64,000 nucleotides of DNA from Schizochytrium sp. TIO01 (Eukaryota > Protista > Bigyra: Labyrinthulomycetes), in assembly GCA_004764695.1 (NCBI GenBank), contig SMSO01000007.1, forward strand, positions 1,619,270 through 1,683,269, written 5' to 3'. Each line of letters begins with the position of its first letter. Position 1 is the first letter of the stretch. The notes beneath the pieces were generated by a model. It had not been told where the DNA came from. It ran no database searches and saw nothing but the letters and a program-made list of their open reading frames with translations. Shown here in pieces: positions 50,440 to 63,980 of the stretch. A program made the translations under genes and the position numbers.

Positions 50440-53400
50440 CTAAGCATGTTCACTCCCCTCTTGAGCACTCCATAAAGCTGCATAGGCGCCATCATTCTTG
50501 GCAAGAAGCTCTTTATGAGTACCCTGTTCGACAGGAACTCCATTAGAGAAAACAACAATCTTGTCAGCATTCTGAATCGTAGTGAGTCGATGAGCAACTA
50601 CGAGAGTTGTAGCCTTTAAATCGTTGATCATTGTATCAAGAGTCTCCTGTACAATACGTTGAGACTCATTGTCCAAAGCGCTTGTAGCCTCATCAAGTAG
50701 CAAAATTTTGGGACGGCGCATTAAGCATCGTGCCAAGCAAATCCGCTGTCGCTGCCCACCACTCAGCTGGCTGCCTTGAGGACCAACATCGGTCTCGTAA
50801 CCTTGAGGGAACTGCATGATAAAGTCATGAGCATTAGACTTCTTGGCAGCAGCTTCTACCATCTCCTGCGTGACAACAATGTCTCGTCCATTAGCATCTG
50901 GCCCAGCCGGGATACCATAGGCAATGTTTTCAAACACTGTGGTGGCAAAAAGCTGGCCTTCTTGCTGTACATATCCAATTTGTTGGCGTAACCACGGCAC
51001 GTAGGCTTCTTTAGTTTCTACACCCCGGATTTTCACGGATCCGCCTGACGCATCATAGAAGCGTTCCACTAAACTAATGCAAGTGGACTTGCCAGAACCA
51101 GATGCGCCAACTAGGGCCACAGTTGTACCGCCCTTGATGTGCAAGGTCATGTTATCATAAATGAGAGCATCGGGACGGCTTGGATAGGCAAAGGACACTC
51201 CATCAAATGTGATGTCGTCTGAAACAGCCGAATCTTCTTTGAGACCAGATTGATCCTCCGGGTCGATTTTGGACTTGCGGTCGAGAACGCGGAATACATT
51301 GTTGATACCTACACTAGCCTTAGCAAGATCCGGTGCCATCGCAGCAGACTGACCCATACCGAAGCCCACCATGAAGATCACCATGATCGAAGTGAATACA
51401 TCCACAAAGGAGTAGCCTTTGTACACAATGAGGCGGGCTGCATAGAAGAACGCAACAGAATATACAGAAAAGGTAACAGCCTGGGAAAAGCCAAAGCCAA
51501 AGCCAGCACTGATACCTTTCTTAACGCCCAGCTGGGAGGGGCCCACAAGGAATTCATCGTACAAATCAACAATCCAAGTACGTAGGTTAAATGCGGTGAC
51601 TGTACGTACACCATAAATAGCCTCGGTAAGGACTTGACTGGCAACAGACAGGGCTTTCTCGTCCTCCTTGGCGAGACCACTCATGATCATTGTTTGCATC
51701 GCTCCACCTACAATGACCAGAGGCAACATAGCCATCATGACAAGAGTAAGCTGCCAGCAGTAGAAAAAAGAGATCACGGTGCCAGCTACAATTGTCACAA
51801 AGTTCATCACAGCAAGTCCAAGGCGATTCGTAATACTGGCCTTGACCACAGATGCATCAGAAGCAAGCTTAGAAGTCAGCCCTCCAATGCTATTCGTGCG
51901 ATCATCATAGAAGCCTATTTCCTGGCGCAGTAATGTCTGAAAGAGCTCCGCGCGAATTCGCGTTGTCATACGTTCTCCAATGATTCCAAAATAACTAAAT
52001 TGGGCCCAATAGCCAATCGCTGTATCTATACCTAGACCAATAAAGCAGAAGATGTACGTGTGTGACTTCTCCGTCACAAGCTCTTGTGACGGAAAGAAAT
52101 AGACAGTTGCAATGCCTGAAAAAATGACGCCATAAACAGGCATAATAGCACCGCTGACTAATGCTGACAAGATAGCAGGAATATAAAGTAGCTTGTCAGG
52201 CTTGCTATATTCAAAGAGACGACCCGTCGAAACCTTGTAAAGGTCTTCCTTATCCTTCTTTTTTTTCTTCCCAAAGCAGCCGCCATTAGAGCTTTCATCT
52301 TCCTCTTCAAGTTCATTCTCAGAATCTCGGACATCTTTGTATGACGCAGTGGAAGGAATTGGAGAAGCCGATAGTGTGCACTTGGAGATCGCTGGCTCAC
52401 TTTATGGGACATTGTACTCCCTCTTGGAGACCATGATTCTTCAGGGTTCGAAGCACTGCTTATGTGAGATCCAAACGAACTTGCAATTCTTCGTCCTGTT
52501 CCATAATCTCTTCGATGCCGATTTCATCAGTGTGGTGGTCATCGTGTCCCTGAGATCTGCTAGCCGCGGCGACCAGCGCAGAGTACATACCATCTATTTT
52601 CATGAGCTCAGAGTGGGAACCTTGCTCCAAAACTCCACCAGCGTTTGCACCGAGGACAACAATCTTATCTGCCGTGCGGACAGTTGACAGACGATGGGCA
52701 ATAACAACAGTCGTCCGACGGCGCTTCTTAAGAAGATTATCAAGAGCTCGCTGTACAGTGCGTTCGGACTTGGAGTCAAGAGCTGAGGTGGCCTCATCAA
52801 GAATAAGCGTGTTGGGGTCACGGATGATGGCGCGTGCAATAGCAATTCGCTGCTTCTGGCCACCTGAAAGCGAAGATCCGCGCTCACCAACGAAGGTGTC
52901 AAAACCTTCAGGCAAGTCTTTGATGAAATCATAGGCATTTGCGGCGCGTGCAGCGTCCTCAATCATTTGACGCGTAACAGTAACACCAGGTGCAGCACCT
53001 TGAGCGATGTTTTGCGCCACAGAGGTGGCGAAGAGCACAGGTTCTTGGCCAACCAGACCTATCTGTGCACGGAGAGAGGCAACGTTGAATTCTCGGATGT
53101 CCCGACCATCAAGAAGTACTCTGCCAGCTTCAGGATCGTAAAAACGCATCATAAGCTGGGTCACTGTACTCTTCCCGCAGCCGGAACCCCCAACAAGAGC
53201 AGTGGTTTTATTCGGTTCAATGTCAAGGTTTAGACTCTTGAAAATTATTACCTCTCGACGGGCAGGATAGCGAAACGTGACATCATCGAAACGGTAGTAG
53301 CCAACAAGTTTGCTACTCTCCACTTCTGCGCCAGAGGTACCACTTGAATTAATTTCAGGTTCACGGTCAATAACCTGAAAGATCTTACCAGCGGCAGCGC

Positions 53401-54838
53401 GAGCATTAGTAAAGGACGACAAGCTTGGGGCAGCTTGCCCAATCGACATCGAGCCAATGATGATGGACCAAAAGCAAGCAAGGATGTCTCCCCCGGTGAT
53501 GCAGCTTCCAGAACCATCAGAATAGTTGCAACCACAATTACAAACAGTACATGAACAGACATCAGCCGGATTATTAAGTGTGAAAGAGTCGAGATAACTG
53601 GAGAACTGGCAACCCAGCGCGGTACCTTCTCTATAGCTCATAGACACACCAACCTGACAGTACTTCTGGAATACAGGATCCACACGCGACGCATCGTACG
53701 GATACTGTGCAGCAGCACTATCTTGGTCATCAAATACGATCTTGGTACCAAACCAGAACGCAAGCGCATAGCAAAGGAAGTATACACCAAAAGTGAAGCC
53801 CATGCCTATTCCTTGGGCATAAGACTTGCGAATACCTGCAAGTTCCGCACGGTCGAGCTCTTTGGTATAACGAGCAACAGTACGCCTCTCAATTGAATAT
53901 GACTGCACAGATCGAATAAGGGAGAATGCTTCCTCGGCTACAGCTCCTGCACGTGCGTAGGCCCCAAGGCTACTGCTTGTTGCCTCTGACATAAGCTTCA
54001 CCATCATAAAGCCGCCAAAGGCAACGAGAGGAGACACGGCCAAAACGACAAGGGTTAATTTCCAGCTGTTGACGAGAGCTATGATAAGGCCACCCAAAAA
54101 CATCGCAGCGAATTGAACACCCGCTCCGAGCTTCTCGCCAAGACCCTCACGTATGATAACTGTATTTTCAGCGATTTTGCTTGATAATTCACCAGGGTTG
54201 GATGTGTCAAACCAGCTGATTTCTTGACGCAGAATGGACGCCAAGTACAGCTTGCGGATGCGAAGAGTCATGCGCTCACTCATTATCGTAAAGAAAGCAA
54301 CCTGTCCAAAACCGCAGACAAAGCATGCTGCCATAAGATAGGCAAAAATCTTCGAATATTTGTCCCCTGCGGCAAGGATATCACCTCCGTTGAAATCATC
54401 TAAGAGGCCTCCAAGAATCAGCGAAAATACTGGAAATAATACACCAGTTCCACAAGCACAAATGGTGCCGGCTATCATAAGGGTTATATCAGTGCAATCT
54501 GAATACTTAAAGAGGCCTGAAATGGAGACAGGAGGTGCATCTTTCTCCTGCATGCCCTCAGCATCTTCATTTTTCCCTTTTCCAAAAAGCATCCTGAAGA
54601 ACCAGTATTTATCATCATCCTCAACATCATCCATTGATTTCCGTTGCACGGGTTTAGTGGTCTTAGTGGTCATGTCCAAAATAATCTCATCCCTGGTAGA
54701 GTTTGCTTGCGAATTGCTCACATCTACATTAGTCGCAACAATTGTACTATGTACATTGCCGGGAGTTAGAGATGTCGGCATACCAACTGTAGGCACTGCT
54801 GATGCAGTGCCATCATTGTCTTTATCAGTATGAATCAT
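50440..54838 (-). CDS. ABCB1: Full-length ABCB1/MDR-type P-glycoprotein (TMD-NBD-TMD-NBD), reading frame interrupted in the linker at ~52381-52486
   Basis: NBD1 GGSGCGKST, LSGGQKQRIAIARA, ILDEATSALD; NBD2 GASGSGKST, LSGGQRQRI, LLDEATSALD; TMD motifs LRQEISWFD and LRQEIGFYD. The two halves are in different frames; the second frame is open upstream to ~52402 (…DLYKVSTGRLFEYSKPD). The symbol denotes family, not proven orthology. Confidence 0.9.
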
Positions 54839-55928
54839 TGCGATAGCAAGCAAGCAAGTTTTCGAAGTTTGAGGTTTGTTTTGATGTCAAGAGACTTCAC
54901 AAAGCAAACACGTCCGATCAAAATATGATCAAGCCTTTCAAATATGGGATATTTTGTGACCATGTCTTAGATTTGACAAGAACTACATTGAGCCTGCGTC
55001 ATAAACTGCTTCAATATGATGCCCTTAACTTTGTTGGGTACAACACACGCCTCAACTGAAGTAGCAAAAGCAATTAATCAACGAAGGTAGGATAAGTATT
55101 GGTAGCAAAGTACTGCAGAGACAATCAAATGTTAACTTTTATCGCAGTTTCATCACGCCATAAGTGTCTCAACTATGATGGTCATGTCTCGTTAAGCCAC
55201 CCTCACACTGTATAACATGAGGAGAGGAACTCACTCGGATCTGGCACGGAATGCCCGGTCAATCCTTCCAGGATTGCATCCCTCTTGCGTCATAAATGCC
55301 TAGAATATGATGAATGTTTTCTTCTTGTTAAATCTCACCACCACCCTCACTGGAATGACCTAATCAGTATTGACGGTTACCACTGCTGCTCCATCAGCAT
55401 GCTGTTGCTTTCGACGTCAAAAATGTCTGCACGATGACGGCTAGTGAGGTCTCCTCAATGAAGACTGCGCTGGGAATGTATCGGGAACAAACCTTAGAGA
55501 AGTTTGTCCACAAAGTGCATTGTGGCAATAAAGCTAGTGCGCTAATCCTGCTCATACTTATCACGGCTTTGAAGGCGTTCAGAGACCTCAATGAATGCAC
55601 AAAGTTGATTATGAAACCTGTTCTCTCATACACTTCTATTCTTCTATTACCTACCTAGCAGGAAGTATTAAGAAAGAATGCTTTCAAAAGTGTTTTCTTT
55701 TGAACAGATGGGTATATGAAGGCTAACGCTCGATGTTCCCTGTGCAAATATACTATAACTATTCTCTGGGTAACAACAAATCGAGATTCGCTTGATTCTT
55801 TATGAAACAGGCGTGGTTCTCATCAGTAGTACCATCTGAGCCGCTCATAAGCCCTTCAAGGCTGTTCTGCTGCTGTTCTCAACAAACTTTCGTACCACTT
55901 ATACACTATTTACTTACTCAAACCTAAC

Positions 55929-57297: not shown

Positions 57298-58059
57298 ATG
57301 GCCAAGCTCGTAGCGATTCTGAGCGCAGATGCGCCTGCAGCATGGCAGCGTGCTGGTTTTGCTTTACGGGCAGAGCCTGTACCTCAATTTCTTGCTGAAA
57401 AAGGCTGCACTGCATGGTTGACGTTACCTACGCTAAAGGAAAACCTTGCAGTGGGCCTTGTTGCAAAGAATCATAGCCCAACGATCAATGTCGTGCACGA
57501 AAAGTCTGGAATCTTAGGATGGATCTGGAGCGGATCAGAGTTAAAAAGTGACATTGGAGCTTTTCCAACAACATTTGTGAATGAGAAAAATTGCAACTTC
57601 GAAGGCAGTCCTGAAACACACCCCAATGGCCTTATTGGCGTAGACCATATCGTCCTCAAAACTGCTGACATGCGAGCCACACTCGCTACTTTTGAAGCCC
57701 ATGGCGTGTCTGTGATTCGAGAGCGTAGCGATATCTACCCAGGCGTTCTGCAAGCTTTCCTGCGGCCGCAAAATGATACAATTATTGAGGTGGTCAGCTC
57801 TACGAAGGACCGAGTGGGCGGGAATACCATGGGTGGTATGCTGGACATTTCCAAAGAAGGAAATGAAGTATGGGGCCTCACACTGGTGTCAAAGGACATT
57901 GATAATACTGCAGATTTCTTGAGCCCCAATGTCAGCAAGATTCGCCAAGCTCAACAAAAAGGTCGAAAAATTGCCACTCTTCGCAACACGTCATTTGGGC
58001 TTCGTGTAGCTCTTGCCATTATGTCTCCGCACCTCAAAGCCGCTGATTCTAAATTATAG
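57298..58059 (+). CDS. Glyoxalase-like / VOC-fold protein (paralog 1)
   Basis: HPNGLIGVDHIVLKTADMRATLATFEAHG...QAFLR...IIEVV...WGLTLVSKDID: VOC beta-alpha-beta-beta-beta pattern with His and Glu metal-ligand positions. Intronless. Confidence 0.8.
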   Translation: MAKLVAILSADAPAAWQRAGFALRAEPVPQFLAEKGCTAWLTLPTLKENLAVGLVAKNHSPTINVVHEKSGILGWIWSGSELKSDIGAFPTTFVNEKNCNFEGSPETHPNGLIGVDHIVLKTADMRATLATFEAHGVSVIRERSDIYPGVLQAFLRPQNDTIIEVVSSTKDRVGGNTMGGMLDISKEGNEVWGLTLVSKDIDNTADFLSPNVSKIRQAQQKGRKIATLRNTSFGLRVALAIMSPHLKAADSKL

Positions 58060-58676: not shown

Positions 58677-59498
58677 ATGGCTCGTCTAGTAGGACTGGCA
58701 AGCAGTGACAAGGCGACAGCATGGCAGAGTGCTGGGTTCACACTCTGCGAAGACCCAGTGCCATCGTTCTTACGAGCTTTAGGCTGCTCTGCATGGCTAA
58801 GAATTCCAACACAGTCTATGCAAATGGCAATAGGTATTGGAGCCCGAGATAACTCTGAAAAAGTGGTCGAGAATGGTCTAGTAGCATGGTTTTGGAGTGG
58901 AATTCCAAAACCCCACGGGGACAGTATCCGCATTGGTGAGATCAAAACAATTTTGGTCAGTGAAGATGAAGTTGCACGCAGTATGGGGAGTGATATGGCA
59001 CACGACATCCATGCTAATGGGCTTGTGCGAATTGATCAGGTCGTTGTTCATACTTCAAATCTGCGTAGTGTTCTGAGCTCCTTTGTGGACGTAGGTGTTA
59101 AGGTACTGCGTAAACGGTCAGACCTTTTCGCAGGTACTACTCAGGCTTTTCTCCGGCCTTCAGACGATGTCATCATTGAAGTAGCGGCACCTGATGAAGA
59201 TGCTCCAGATCAGCGTGTGGTAAAACATTTTGCAAAACATGCTAAGCTCACCCACTTATGGGGTTTCACACTCGTTACAAACGACATGAACGCCACTGTT
59301 GCAGCCCTGAGCCCAAACGTTGGAGAGATAATTAAGGCAAAGCAACCCGGCCGCTTTATCGCACATGTCAAGCATCAAGCCTTTGGTCTTCGAACACCAA
59401 TTCCAATTATGTCGCAGCATATCAAAATCAACCGAGGGACCGAAATTGAGGCGCCACCTCGTTCAAGAACCACATTATCAAATACTAGTAGGATTTAG
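58677..59498 (+). CDS. Glyoxalase-like / VOC-fold protein (paralog 2)
   Basis: Co-linear with paralog 1 (AWQSAGFTL..DPVPSFL; HANGLVRIDQVVVHTSNL; QAFLRP; IIEV; WGFTLV; AKQPGRFIA; FGLRTPIPIMS). Confidence 0.8.
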   Translation: MARLVGLASSDKATAWQSAGFTLCEDPVPSFLRALGCSAWLRIPTQSMQMAIGIGARDNSEKVVENGLVAWFWSGIPKPHGDSIRIGEIKTILVSEDEVARSMGSDMAHDIHANGLVRIDQVVVHTSNLRSVLSSFVDVGVKVLRKRSDLFAGTTQAFLRPSDDVIIEVAAPDEDAPDQRVVKHFAKHAKLTHLWGFTLVTNDMNATVAALSPNVGEIIKAKQPGRFIAHVKHQAFGLRTPIPIMSQHIKINRGTEIEAPPRSRTTLSNTSRI

Positions 59499-59621: not shown

Positions 59622-62600
59622 TTAAATGCAAAATAAAAGATCTTCGATGTCTCCTGTTGAGGAGCTCGTGCCACTGCTTTGACTCTGACTTTCCATTCCC
59701 GTTGATATGGTAGATCTACTTGGTGCACGATTGCGCCGTATGTTATGCTGGCTTTTTGGACCAAATCGTGCAGTTATCTTATTGATTGCAACCAGCTGTA
59801 GGTGTTCGATCTCCTCGCGTTGAAGCTTCAGGTGAGGGAATTTGTTTGACAAACGATTAGAGAAATGAATTCGAATCATCTCAATGAAAACAGGTGATCG
59901 AAATTCTCGGAATCTTGGTTTTTCGGTGATATTATCCACATAGCTACGCAAATGAGGAAAGTTTCGATCCAAGATTGAGAATTTGTGTTCAGCCTCTATG
60001 CAGTCCTCAATGAAGCGAAGTTCTGAGAAAACGAGAATATCAGTCATGCCTAAGTCAGAACCGCATAAATAAGGGCCCGCTCCCTGTGACTCCTCCTCGG
60101 CTAGCATATCATCAAGGAGGCGAAGAATAGACTCTAGCTGCGCCAAATGGTACTTGTTGTTTTCTGGTGCTTCAGACATGCTACCAAATTCCTTCACGCG
60201 AATTTTCACTAGAGCTTCCCGCTCATTGCTTTTTACTAGGTCAGTCACTTGCAATGGACTATGTTCTGGATCTTCGGCGTCTCCATAGAATTTTGCAGTG
60301 AATAAAATTAAAAATGGCTCAGGATAATCAGGCATCGTACTCGTGAATGAATCCAAGCGTTCAAAATGAGCAAGCCAGGACGACACAGCTGGGAAGCCCT
60401 CCGAAGTAATGTTAAAATCATGGAACCAACTACAGCATACCTTTACTGTTCGCCAGATGGAGCAAACAAGTACAATATCGTTTACAGAGCAAGTGAATCC
60501 ATGCAGAAATGGGCCCGGAGTATTCCGAAGTTGATTCTCAATGCCTCCTAAAAGACTCTTGAGAGCACCATACTTTGAAGAGCGCTCAGGGTCATTTGTT
60601 TTGGCTTTGAGATAGGCCTCGCAAATCTCATTGCTGGCATTGAACAAATTCATCTCTGATAGATCGGCTAGAGAATCCATACTACCAATATGCAAGGGAG
60701 TATCAAGAGGGCCATATAATTGCGGGTGAAGTTGACGAAGGACATTCAGAATCATCTGTGACTCACTCGTCCATAAGCCATTCCAGTAAATGCTTGGACA
60801 CATTCCATTCGAAGTAGCAGTAAACCACTCTGGCTTGTCGAGTAGGTCAATTTTGATGGTCTTAAAAGGTATACAGGCCTCTGCCGCAACCATCTCAACA
60901 ACACGTGAATAGGGGCATACCTTTACTAGAAACTCACCGCGATGTACGCAACCAACCGCTAAGTAAATGGTGTTCATTTCAAAGGGCGGGCCAGATACAC
61001 CACCTTGCACAGAGATCGAGCCATCACTTGCCACACGCACACTGTCATGACCATAGCTTGCAATAATTCGATGGATCATTGCAGCTTCAGCCTCAAGACG
61101 CTCTTGAGTCACCTGGCAGCGTAGTGGTTGCCAATCTGGATACTCTTTGGCAAAGTTTTCGCAGGCTATTAGCACAAGAAAGGTCTCAGCTCCTTCATGT
61201 TCGTAAGAGGCTTGCATGGAAGGTGTTCGCATCATTGCGTGGATGTAGCGTTCCAAACGTCCAAGCCCGTACTTTTTTAGTGAGAAACCATCCATCGGTC
61301 GTAAGATATAGTGCACGAAAAACAAAAGCTGTGGCGCAAGAATGAAGTCATCTAGACCTGCTTGAGTGTCACCAGAGAGGAACGGATGCCACGAAAAGCC
61401 ATCAACTTTGCACCCTGCCTGATATTCTTCAAGCAATTTATCCAAAGGCTTTAATACTTTCAGAACTCGAGACAGTCTTTCCATATCAACAGCATCACGC
61501 TGCGGTTCGGCACCTGTGCCATCTGGGCGCATCATGTAGCTATACACAGATAATTTAATTTCCTCACTAAGTGCAAGACACTCATCAAACGAATGATGTT
61601 GGGGCAGCTTCTCTGACTCTTTAGGATAGAGCTCGTACAGTAAACGTAATACTGCATTTGCGCCTATGGTAACACGCTCTTGAGGACCGGGCCCAAGCAT
61701 CATAGGGAGCTGGTCTGGCCGAACCCAATCCGGGCAATCCTCCACATCAACTAGAACAATTTCATAAGAAACCCCGAGAGCCCGTAAGAGAACTTCAATC
61801 TTTTGTGACGACGGACATGAACGTGCCAAACGATCCCCACGATGCTTGACACTCACGCAAAGATGCACTTGGTCACCGTCGCACCGGGGTCTTACCTTGA
61901 CTTTTCGATCACGCTTTAGTTTACAGTATGTGGTACGTTGACCAGGTGCATCCCGGCTCTTGTTCAAAATATCACCTGTGCCCTTACCATGCAAGTTAAC
62001 AATAACCTTACCGCGTGTTTCCTCTGGATTCATTTCAAGCATCTCTTGAACTTGCTCACGGGTAGCAAAAGCAAGCAAGTGCGCATGGCGCTCTAGAGCA
62101 TCAAAGAATGCCCACGTTGACACAGGAAGATTGTGTGGACGATTCAGGCGTTCAGCTTGTTCGCTAAATTTATGATGCAGATAGCGCATGATGTCACGCG
62201 AATTAGAGGTCCATTTGTTTTCAAAGAACACAGCAGGTGTTCGCGCAGACGGAACCGCATCTGTAAACCACGCAGGTTTGTTGTCCCAATCTATGTCAAT
62301 GATTTGGTACGGGATACCTGCTTCCATGATGAACATGGTGACCACCCGAGAATATGGGCATAACCGAACTAAATAATTCTTTACTCGCACACAGCCATAA
62401 CAAATGTAGACAACATTAGCAAGAGGCTCAGCTGGCAGAGAAGTTTGCACTAAGGCTCGTGATGTGTCATTGCGAAGCTCTTCCTTGCGTTTGCGCCGCC
62501 GTCTCCTAGAGTGAGAGGCGACACCACTCCAAAGCTTATCTCGAGCTTGTTCTGAGTCACTTGCCTCGGACTCAGAGGGGATATCAGAATCCCCGCTTGC

Positions 62601-63980
62601 ATCAGCAAGCGCCTCCATTAATTCTTCATGGGTAATACCTACAGCAGCCTGCACAGCGTCGAATTTGTCAAAGTTGGCGCGAATGCCTTTCCCGCCAGCC
62701 CGCCTTTCCATCATATCGCCAAAAAGAATACCTCCAAGTTCTAGGTCTATTCCTTTATATTGTGTTGTACAAACAAGCATATCATTATAGACAGAGTCAT
62801 GCCCCACAAAGCTGACACTTAAAACAATATTCGCCATTTCATCTGGATCAAGTAAAAATCTTCGCAATGGTGACTTTTGATCAATTTCATGAATAATAGT
62901 AGCCACAGCCGTAATGGTTGGGGGGAAGCTTGCTTGTAAATTCTCGTAGCTCACAAAATGTTCTCCCTCCTCGGTGTCGTGAAATCGTAATAACGCTACT
63001 GCCACACGGGTCTCGTAAACAAGGTTGACACGTCGATTACCTACACGAATTAACAGTGTAGGCTTCCCATCACGGGTTGTAACGAGAGCCTTCTTGCTAA
63101 AAACGATGTCTGGTTTAGGAATCTGAAATTTTGATACAACAACAGACAAAACAATCACATTGAGCATAAGACCAGTAAACTGTTGAGCGCAGGCAAGTGT
63201 ATAACAGCCGTACGAACTCGGGAGACAAGGCCCATAGCCAAGTGTTAGTACATTGCTTGTTGCATAGACAGCAGCAATTCCCAGAGTGCCTTGTAGGAAC
63301 GTATCCATTCCTGATTGGCACTCAATACTATTTGCAATAGGCCAAGTGAGTAGTGACCAAAAAAAGCAAGTAATTACATACGAGAGCAAAGACAAGAAAA
63401 ATACAAAGGCCCAACTCCAGTCCAAGAGTACATAATACCAGTTTTTGGCCTCATACCACTTTGACGACCCTGTCCCATGCAGAGCAGATCGTTTCTTGCG
63501 TTTTCCTGATTCAATTTGATCTGGCGCATACCGGCGCTGGGTGTATGAATGTTTATTCTTACGTCGCAGGCGTTCGACACGAAATCGTCGCCATTCGCTC
63601 AAGGAGAGCCCCATGTGATGAGTCTGAAGTCTAGGCATGCGACACTCTTTGCATACATCTTCATCGTTGTGCCGGTGGAAGTGAGAACCAAACCTGGTCT
63701 TATTCCTGCGCCTTAAGCCGGTTTCCTCGTTATGAGTACTCATTTCACTTGCAGATCTAGGTAGGCTGCCCATGGAATTCCTTCGAGTGTTCGGTCCCAG
63801 TGGAAGTTCGCCACTCTCGACAATCATGGCATTCTCCTTGGGATTTTCCGGCTCCTCATCGCTTGATGGTGTGTTACCCATCTGTACTTCATCTGGCGTG
63901 TACACGCACGTTTGCAATGCCGAAATGGGTTCATTTGCGTGCTCACCCCCAGAAGTTGCATTTGACTTCGATCCTGGCAT
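59622..63980 (-). CDS. Inward-rectifier K+ channel (Kir) fused to tandem CLIC/DHAR/omega-like glutathione-transferase domains
   Basis: Kir part: WYYVLLDWSW, M1, filter TLGYG (63231-63245), M2 QQFTGLMLNVIVLSVVVSKFQIPK, IVFSKKALVTTRDGKPTLLIRVGNRR, IIHEIDQKSPL. GST N-domains CPYS (62349-62360), CPSS (61806-61817), CPYS (60906-60917). GST C-domain motifs PFLSG...DDFILAPQL, GPFLHG..SVNDI and GPYLCG..GMTDI. The frame stays open upstream of ATG 63980 to the window edge. Confidence 0.9.
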   Translation of the reverse strand: MPGSKSNATSGGEHANEPISALQTCVYTPDEVQMGNTPSSDEEPENPKENAMIVESGELPLGPNTRRNSMGSLPRSASEMSTHNEETGLRRRNKTRFGSHFHRHNDEDVCKECRMPRLQTHHMGLSLSEWRRFRVERLRRKNKHSYTQRRYAPDQIESGKRKKRSALHGTGSSKWYEAKNWYYVLLDWSWAFVFFLSLLSYVITCFFWSLLTWPIANSIECQSGMDTFLQGTLGIAAVYATSNVLTLGYGPCLPSSYGCYTLACAQQFTGLMLNVIVLSVVVSKFQIPKPDIVFSKKALVTTRDGKPTLLIRVGNRRVNLVYETRVAVALLRFHDTEEGEHFVSYENLQASFPPTITAVATIIHEIDQKSPLRRFLLDPDEMANIVLSVSFVGHDSVYNDMLVCTTQYKGIDLELGGILFGDMMERRAGGKGIRANFDKFDAVQAAVGITHEELMEALADASGDSDIPSESEASDSEQARDKLWSGVASHSRRRRRKRKEELRNDTSRALVQTSLPAEPLANVVYICYGCVRVKNYLVRLCPYSRVVTMFIMEAGIPYQIIDIDWDNKPAWFTDAVPSARTPAVFFENKWTSNSRDIMRYLHHKFSEQAERLNRPHNLPVSTWAFFDALERHAHLLAFATREQVQEMLEMNPEETRGKVIVNLHGKGTGDILNKSRDAPGQRTTYCKLKRDRKVKVRPRCDGDQVHLCVSVKHRGDRLARSCPSSQKIEVLLRALGVSYEIVLVDVEDCPDWVRPDQLPMMLGPGPQERVTIGANAVLRLLYELYPKESEKLPQHHSFDECLALSEEIKLSVYSYMMRPDGTGAEPQRDAVDMERLSRVLKVLKPLDKLLEEYQAGCKVDGFSWHPFLSGDTQAGLDDFILAPQLLFFVHYILRPMDGFSLKKYGLGRLERYIHAMMRTPSMQASYEHEGAETFLVLIACENFAKEYPDWQPLRCQVTQERLEAEAAMIHRIIASYGHDSVRVASDGSISVQGGVSGPPFEMNTIYLAVGCVHRGEFLVKVCPYSRVVEMVAAEACIPFKTIKIDLLDKPEWFTATSNGMCPSIYWNGLWTSESQMILNVLRQLHPQLYGPLDTPLHIGSMDSLADLSEMNLFNASNEICEAYLKAKTNDPERSSKYGALKSLLGGIENQLRNTPGPFLHGFTCSVNDIVLVCSIWRTVKVCCSWFHDFNITSEGFPAVSSWLAHFERLDSFTSTMPDYPEPFLILFTAKFYGDAEDPEHSPLQVTDLVKSNEREALVKIRVKEFGSMSEAPENNKYHLAQLESILRLLDDMLAEEESQGAGPYLCGSDLGMTDILVFSELRFIEDCIEAEHKFSILDRNFPHLRSYVDNITEKPRFREFRSPVFIEMIRIHFSNRLSNKFPHLKLQREEIEHLQLVAINKITARFGPKSQHNIRRNRAPSRSTISTGMESQSQSSGTSSSTGDIEDLLFCI

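Follow-up and report, generated by a model that had tools for sequence, protein, structure and literature searches.

The locus considered here raises two questions: whether a potassium channel and a chain of glutathione S-transferase (GST) domains that share a reading frame are made as one protein and, if they are, what the GST domains do for the channel. It lies in a stretch of 64,000 nucleotides, which we call the window, from contig SMSO01000007.1 of Schizochytrium sp. TIO01 (positions 1,619,270 to 1,683,269). The in-window part of the gene runs over positions 59622..63980 on the minus strand, with 1452 codons and a stop; all features of the gene given below are on that strand, and residues are numbered from its in-window first methionine (M1). 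An earlier note on this DNA, made from its letters, had read the gene as an inward rectifier (Kir) channel fused to three Cys-type GST domains and had proposed that glutathione or redox state gates the channel. We find that the gene belongs to a clade of Kirs whose fused domains, be they sensors or enzymes, are of a new class. In our view redox or glutathione gating is a well-founded hypothesis for this clade, within which gating by glutathione species is something that we purely infer. The Kir-GST gene is the sole Kir gene of the 64-Mb genome, as found in a whole-genome search.

The uninterrupted 1452-residue open reading frame (ORF) of the earlier note is present over 59622-63980, and its coding region has no intron. 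The G+C content of the window is about 46%, and a stop-free frame of this length in such DNA is far beyond chance. The whole-genome search showed that the frame remains open for 1628 codons without a stop, continuing for 176 codons upstream of the in-window M1 and past the end of the window. Contigs from four public runs, belonging to four studies, match the window colinearly across 58.6-64.0 kb without a joint, and none has an indel in the ORF; 19 of the 23 listed strain variants within the ORF are synonymous. The starts of three of the four contigs fall within a span of 40 nt, some 60-100 nt upstream of the neighbouring convergent gene, one of them bearing an adapter remnant, and upstream of the Kir-GST gene all four stop at a common point. 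This pattern of contig ends looks RNA-like, with the run type a guess and with the limit that contigs spanning two genes are no proof of a single transcript.

The comparative evidence for a single product is stronger than that of the contigs. Full-length orthologues with the same domain order, in which Kir is followed by an N-terminal GST domain, an N-C unit and an N-C-C unit, are found in Hondaea fermentalgiana (57% identity) and in a JGI genome (47%), and the same layout is present in Thraustochytrium sp. LLF1b (42%) and Mucochytrium quahogii (40%). The proteins of LLF1b and Mucochytrium come from MMETSP poly-A transcriptomes and hold the Kir part, the three N-domains and the C-domains in a single ORF, which for Mucochytrium is labelled 'type:complete'; in all, fused ORFs occur in five thraustochytrid-type genomes or transcriptomes. 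A gene-model artefact, whether by read-through between neighbouring Kir and GST genes or by faulty assembly, would fit the observation that the only Aurantiochytrium transcriptome protein found (P0001, MMETSP0961; 99% identical) is a 904-residue fragment that begins inside GST module 1, and the contigs, as noted above, cannot prove a single transcript. Against such an artefact stand the 1628 codons without a stop, the shared colinear sequence of four independent runs, the full-length fused transcripts in two further genera and the fused ORFs in the five thraustochytrid-type data sets, and we consider it scarcely credible; the 904-residue protein is most simply a fragmentary assembly. The misassembly that the earlier note had allowed for is thus countered both by the four colinear sets of contigs and by the orthologues of the same layout. 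The gene is no product of misassembly, and in related species a single transcript carries the Kir and the GST parts together. As a separate observation, the header of P0001 carries TAXON_ID 87120, which leads to the fungus Rhizopogon burlinghamii, together with an ORGANISM field reading 'Auranti...'; the number is wrong or truncated.

The length given in the earlier note needs correction, because the likely start codon lies 130 codons upstream of the in-window M1. The open upstream extension of the frame (L001:2911-3441, window-equivalent 64001-64511, minus strand, beyond the window end) holds two more in-frame ATGs when translated. One of these, the candidate start ATG (MGTGSSQ), is placed 390 nt upstream of position 63980 (L001 3300-3298, minus strand). 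The contigs of the four public runs stop 388-397 nt past the window end, which is 18-27 nt upstream of the MGTGSSQ ATG and downstream of the more distal in-frame ATG. The Hondaea orthologue begins with MGASSSS, and both beginnings fit MGxxxS, which we take to be the consensus for N-myristoylation. No similarity between the upstream extension and the Hondaea protein was detected by BLASTP ahead of the conserved block. The choice of MGTGSSQ as the start is drawn solely from the contig ends and the shared MGxxxS beginning, and since the N-terminal extension shows no sequence conservation, it is from these two that we infer the start and the length; the full protein probably has about 1582 residues, with an N-terminal extension rich in serine and asparagine.

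The complete Kir pore and cytoplasmic domain that had been read from the letters of the window are both recovered. Directly ahead of the slide helix stands a conserved basic motif, GKRKKRS (residues 159-165; 63486..63506), kept in four orthologues and reading KKKS in one. It is followed by the membrane module, consisting of slide helix, first transmembrane helix (TM1), pore helix, filter and second transmembrane helix (TM2) (residues 170-291; 63108..63473), with the K+ selectivity filter TLGYG at residues 246-250 (63231..63245). The beta-rich cytoplasmic domain (residues 292-445; 62646..63107) comes directly after TM2 and is matched by Pfam IRK_C (PF17655) with 54-58 bits, where the cut-off is 22.5, and by Foldseek. 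The Pfam IRK model for the transmembrane part gave no match to the protein at E<=0.1. In a phmmer search against the PDB, residues ~179-417 align with positions 35-269 of the 301 of KirBac3.1 (4e-18), an alignment that takes in TM1 through TM2, and Kir2.2 (5e-16), Kir4.1, GIRK2 and Kir6.x are also matched. Residues 151-470 were modelled with AF2 on 48 sequences (pLDDT 90.2, pTM 0.80); the model has helices at positions 40-68, 83-95 and 107-136, that is, two transmembrane helices flanking a pore helix, and its best Foldseek match is KirBac3.1 (E 2e-22, TM-score 0.74-0.82), followed by Kir2.2, Kir6.1 and GIRK2. The glycine hinge is retained as Gly270.

Within this channel part, the stretch from TM2 into the C-linker reads SKFQIPKPDIVFS and, as read by eye only, contains two Lys and no PKKR-like cluster. 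Asn274 presumably corresponds to the pore-lining position known as the rectification controller. Asn occupies this position in 42 of the 48 members of the GST-Kir clade defined below, and bacterial-type Kirs have Val or Thr. Asn at this presumed controller site suggests weak rectification. The Kir part thus looks KirBac-like more than animal-like, given Asn274 and the apparent lack of a PKKR-type cluster after TM2, a comparison that depends partly on the animal Kir numbering.

All the GST motifs described for the remainder of the protein were found, namely CPYS, CPSS and CPYS (starting at residues 541, 722 and 1022) together with KPAWF (568), CPDWV (749) and KPEWF (1049). Module 1 (61986..62411) comprises an N-domain at residues 524-610, with Cys541, a cis-Pro in RTPAV and the pair NS, and a three-helix stub at residues 622-665; the AF2 model gives it these three helices and no full C-domain. 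Module 2 (residues 701-975; 61056..61880) has an N-domain with Cys722 and a helical C-domain, and module 3 (residues 1001-1244; 60249..60980) is a complete DHAR-like GST with Cys1022, cis-Pro 1062 and Glu1073-Ser1074. The orphan C-domain of the earlier note is an extra GST C-terminal domain (residues 1247-1404; 59769..60242) that is matched by Pfam GST_C_3, GST_C and GST_C_2 and cross-matches its homologue, the C-domain of module 3, as a paralogue. Among the N-domains, module 1 scores 51 bits (Pfam GST_N_2) and module 3 29.8 bits, above the cut-off, and GST_N_3 on module 2 reaches 21.3 bits, slightly below the cut-off of 22.

Whether these C-terminal repeats score as GST folds had been posed as a point on which the whole reading could fail, and they do score as such. 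Modules 2 and 3 come out as full GST folds, with structural matches of Z 16-17.4, in an AF2 model of residues 505-1452 (pLDDT 77.4), and a helical GST C-domain comes after them. Aligned with VIA-align, module 3 fits the dehydroascorbate reductase (DHAR) DHAR1 (5ela) with Z 17.4 and rmsd 2.4 A over 211 of 212 residues, and the chloride intracellular channel protein CLIC1 with Z 16.9; module 2 (model residues 197-451) fits a tau GST with Z 16.7 and CLIC5 with Z 16.1. By phmmer, the match of module 3 takes in the whole of Arabidopsis DHAR1 (5el8, 2.6e-14), the N-domain of module 1 matches DHAR2 (5lol, 4.6e-8), and module 2 gives weak CLIC1/4 matches. The best Foldseek match for the GST region as a whole is the tandem GST TDR1 (PDB 4ags, E 2e-11). 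The GST domains of the query are DHAR/CLIC-like Cys-GSTs. Their kinship with CLICs could be taken further, to a second conductance in which CLIC-like N-domains enter the membrane and form a further pathway, for anions, next to the K+ pore, as might be argued from the CLIC1 match and from the Pfam CLIC-like_N match to module 1 (35 bits in the whole protein and 21 bits in the fragment, cut-off 23.5). The similarity to DHARs is equal or better, however, and no sequence feature singles out such a pathway, which we think most improbable; membrane insertion of CLICs, proposed for CLIC1, is itself debated.

The partnership of Kir and Cys-GST extends well beyond this genome. Of 1.84 billion representatives scanned in full with HMMER, 1523 matched at E<=0.001, and a domain scan of the best 150 of these found at least ~40 clusters (at 50% identity) that pair Kir with 1-5 GST N-domains, a frequency to be read with the caveat that the Kir query included GST parts, so that fusions rank high among the matches. 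In a maximum-likelihood tree of 89 near-complete Kir domains, from which animal Kirs were left out, 41 short bacterial-type Kirs, of which none carries a GST (0/41), are divided by a branch with SH-aLRT 99 from 48 others that include all 37 GST carriers. The remaining 11 members of this clade of 48 are mostly short predictions and probably partial. The GST domains lie C-terminal to Kir in 30 of the carriers, N-terminal in 4 and on both sides in 3, and on this sequence evidence the partnership survives rearrangement.

The architecture search that the earlier note had called for thus finds the layout again in Hondaea, Thraustochytrium and Mucochytrium and, more loosely, in a wider protist clade. 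Named members belong to the Labyrinthulomycetes, to Amoebophrya (Syndiniales), to the Picozoa and, among green algae, to the prasinophytes Pycnococcus, Pseudoscourfieldia, Chloropicon and Pyramimonas; the Pycnococcus protein, of 1988 residues, joins Kir to four GSTs. A scan of metagenomes added two short contigs (L002 and L003) with a relative of 33% identity that is split into several ORFs and is of no use for gene order. Relatives of the GST region also exist as stand-alone soluble proteins (P0007, P0015 from Aplanochytrium minuta, and P0150), which consist of the N-C-C unit in 460-536 residues or of the C-C part in 310 residues, and P0006 (1036 residues) has three GST N-domains and no Kir. 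From the stand-alone N-C-C and C-C relatives, the GST array of the channel seems to have been built from a pre-existing unit.

To assess the state of the glutathione sites, residues were counted in an HMM alignment of the GST N-domains across the family proteins. All but one of 78 domains have the active-site Cys (77/78), and the KPxW motif retains its Lys in 60/79, its Pro in 67/78 and its Trp in 75/77; the cis-Pro is present in 70/73, and helix 3 has a Ser or Thr in 56/71, at an overall identity among these domains of about 30%. Motif variants in some family members include CPYC, the classical glutaredoxin dithiol. The Cys-Pro of each query module is kept in all orthologues that cover it (P0001 starts after Cys541). 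Module 3 of the query has all the glutathione-site residues (the Lys of KPxW, the cis-Pro and the acid-Ser pair), module 1 has Asn-Ser where acid-Ser is expected, and the site of module 2 is partly degenerate, with Cys in place of Lys and Gly-Ala in place of acid-Ser. Site conservation of this kind at about 30% identity is, as far as sequences can tell, the signature of a working glutathione or thiol site and not of a scaffold. GST-like domains do serve as scaffolds in eEF1B-gamma and in the multi-synthetase complex, and a structural scaffold, in which the GST folds have lost their chemistry and serve assembly or partner binding, would account for the partly degenerate module 2, the truncated module 1 and the orphan C-domain. 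We judge it quite improbable here, with Cys in 77/78 and KPxW and cis-Pro kept at about 90% or more at ~30% identity, which would be unexpected for a pure scaffold. With DHAR/CLIC-like domains whose glutathione-site residues are so strongly conserved, the most economical reading is that the channel is linked to glutathione or to redox state.

The same conservation is what an enzyme requires, and the GST modules could instead be working DHARs or thiol-transferases that are merely anchored at the membrane by a channel whose gating is independent of them. Module 3, which can be aligned to the whole of plant DHAR1 and keeps all catalytic-site residues, would suit such a tethered enzyme, as would the existence of soluble stand-alone N-C-C relatives (P0007; P0015 of Aplanochytrium). 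Co-location alone, however, fails to explain why the link of Kir and GST is found across the whole Kir clade, in several supergroups, and why it is kept through N- and C-terminal rearrangements and at copy numbers from 1 to 5, and a K+ channel is an odd anchor for ascorbate recycling. We therefore regard a purely anchored enzyme as unlikely, while giving it real weight.

A further alternative keeps the link to the channel and makes it covalent: the fused Cys-GSTs would act as a built-in (de)glutathionylase that modifies cysteines of the channel or of a partner, in place of allosteric ligand sensing. S-glutathionylation inhibits the animal channels Kir6.1 (at Cys176) and Kir5.1 (at Cys158), and glutaredoxin undoes the oxidant-induced inhibition of KATP (Kir6) channels (PMC11631806); these observations are also among the closest precedents for the sensor reading taken up below. 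The CPYC motif of some family members points the same way, as does a clade-specific Cys in the column of Val318 (window 63027-63029), directly after the cytoplasmic GNxR, which is found in 36 of the 48 members of the GST-Kir clade and in 0 of the 41 bacterial-type Kirs, and which is a candidate glutathionylation target in other lineages. The query and its thraustochytrid orthologues have Val in that column, however, and no target Cys is evident in the query, where the cysteines conserved in the Kir part are Cys221 and Cys252, both judged extracellular, and Cys404. For the protein of this locus we find the covalent mechanism distinctly unlikely.

We return to sensing by the GST modules, which is the reading that we prefer: that they are a thiol-redox or glutathione sensor biasing the Kir gate is a proposal that we hold to be evenly balanced between right and wrong. 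Under this proposal the Kir-GST polypeptide would be the subunit of a tetrameric K+ channel of the Kir type, with two transmembrane helices per subunit, and, both termini of a Kir being cytoplasmic, the tetramer would hold twelve Cys-GST N-domains in the glutathione-rich cytosol. The modules would bind glutathione at their conserved Cys, KPxW, cis-Pro and Ser sites, and their state would track the thiol-redox balance of the cytosol, the active-site Cys passing between free, S-glutathionylated and oxidised forms in the way that it does during DHAR catalysis. If this state were passed to the Kir cytoplasmic domain, the open probability would shift, and K+ flux would then follow GSH/GSSG, dehydroascorbate or glutathione conjugates. 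Glutathione binding, formation of the tetramer and coupling to the gate are each presumed in this scheme.

A complex prediction for four Kir cytoplasmic domains with GST module 1 gave a score of 0.00, with the fold of the partner uncertain, and speaks neither for nor against this scheme. Several observations weigh against it. Module 2 lacks the Lys and the acid-Ser, and module 1 lacks the full C-domain that would form the H-site, so that perhaps not all modules bind a ligand. The orthologue from the JGI genome (P0003) has TLSSSV at residues 246-251, where the others have TLGYGP or TLGFG, with the remainder of its channel and its three Cys-GST sites all preserved; this protein may conduct non-selectively or not at all, and K+ selectivity is thus not universal among these proteins. 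Finally, conservation of the active sites suits a tethered enzyme equally well as a sensor.

Two further segments of the protein and the neighbouring genes complete the description of the locus. The linker between the channel and the first GST module (residues 446-523; 62412..62645) contains an acidic stretch, a polybasic run and a conserved LRND..T..LP segment; the polybasic run, RRRRRKRK (residues 492-499; 62481-62504), follows the acidic, serine-rich stretch and is partly conserved in the orthologues. The protein ends with the motif DIEDLLFCI (residues 1444-1452; 59625..59651), in which D1444 and E1446-I1452 are invariant among the orthologues and the second position is V in one. This tail fits the acidic dileucine pattern [DE]xxxL[LI] and ends in Cys-Ile, and it may decide the target membrane of the channel. 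On the plus strand, two tandem paralogues (39% identity; 57298-58059 and 58677-59498) give sub-threshold matches to Pfam models of the glyoxalase/VOC superfamily and no meaningful match to solved structures (best E 0.28); the second of them is convergent with the Kir-GST gene, and the contigs of both merge. The idea of a glyoxalase/Kef-like gene cluster is weak, and these neighbours, with sub-threshold VOC matches only, are not counted in its support. On the minus strand, two adjacent ORFs (50440-52170 and 52460-54853) each contain ABC_membrane and ABC_tran domains of the ABCB type, and they may be one intron-split gene or two half-transporters.

The statement of the earlier note that no channel with such an architecture had been described holds for the literature searched, in that full-text searches found no paper on a Kir-GST fusion. 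The sequences of dozens of these fusions are, however, already deposited in databases with automatically assigned labels, among them 'Inward rectifier potassium channel 2', 'GST N-terminal domain-containing protein' and 'chloride intracellular channel protein 1'. We propose, with rather less than even confidence, that these proteins form an unstudied family of protist K+ channels, spread over labyrinthulids, Syndiniales, prasinophytes and Picozoa, that is gated directly by glutathione/ascorbate redox state or by glutathione conjugates through the fused Cys-GSTs. Kir channels are the textbook case of control by cytoplasmic ligands (PIP2, G-beta-gamma, ATP and pH), and a Kir clade with GST domains whose sites are intact would add thiol-redox state to that list. 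The hosts are ecologically important, including dinoflagellate parasites, picoplanktonic green algae and the thraustochytrids used for industrial DHA production, and redox-coupled K+ transport could be relevant to stress physiology and to the engineering of strains. The hypothesis lends itself to direct testing, with an intronless coding region and known catalytic cysteines at residues 541, 722 and 1022, and Aurantiochytrium is transformable.

Compared with known systems, the channel part shares with KirBac3.1, KirBac1.1 and the animal Kirs (Kir2.2, Kir6.x, GIRK2) the slide helix, the two transmembrane helices, the pore helix with TxGYG and the Ig-like beta-rich cytoplasmic domain, to which the query adds about 1000 C-terminal residues of GST domains. 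The PKKR-type basic cluster that follows TM2 and binds PIP2 in animal Kirs appears, by eye, to be missing in the query, which reads SKFQIPKPD there. Module 3 has in common with plant DHAR1/2 and the animal CLICs the Cys of CPxS, the KPxWF motif, the cis-Pro and the acid-Ser, but those proteins are soluble and of a single module, whereas the query chains three modules behind a channel, with one truncated and a C-domain duplicated. The tandem omega-like GST TDR1 of Leishmania also places two Cys-GST modules in one chain, with a different placement of the modules (rmsd ~13 A) and without a membrane part.

Two systems are close in idea and are made from other parts. The bacterial KefB and KefC control K+ efflux by glutathione and its adducts through a CPA2 membrane domain and a KTN/RCK domain, with no GST fold, and the Pfam scan found neither a CPA2 nor a KTN/RCK domain in the Kir-GST protein; the two are analogous and not homologous. 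Kv-beta, an aldo-keto reductase fold that binds NADPH and is attached to Kv1 channels, resembles the arrangement proposed here in that an enzyme fold with a redox ligand site is suspended below a tetrameric K+ channel and serves it as a sensor of metabolism, and it differs in being a separate polypeptide of another fold with another ligand. If the proposed gating is true, the Kir-GST channels would be a eukaryotic counterpart of Kef and Kv-beta assembled from different parts, and the first case of a GST fold acting as the ligand sensor of an ion channel.

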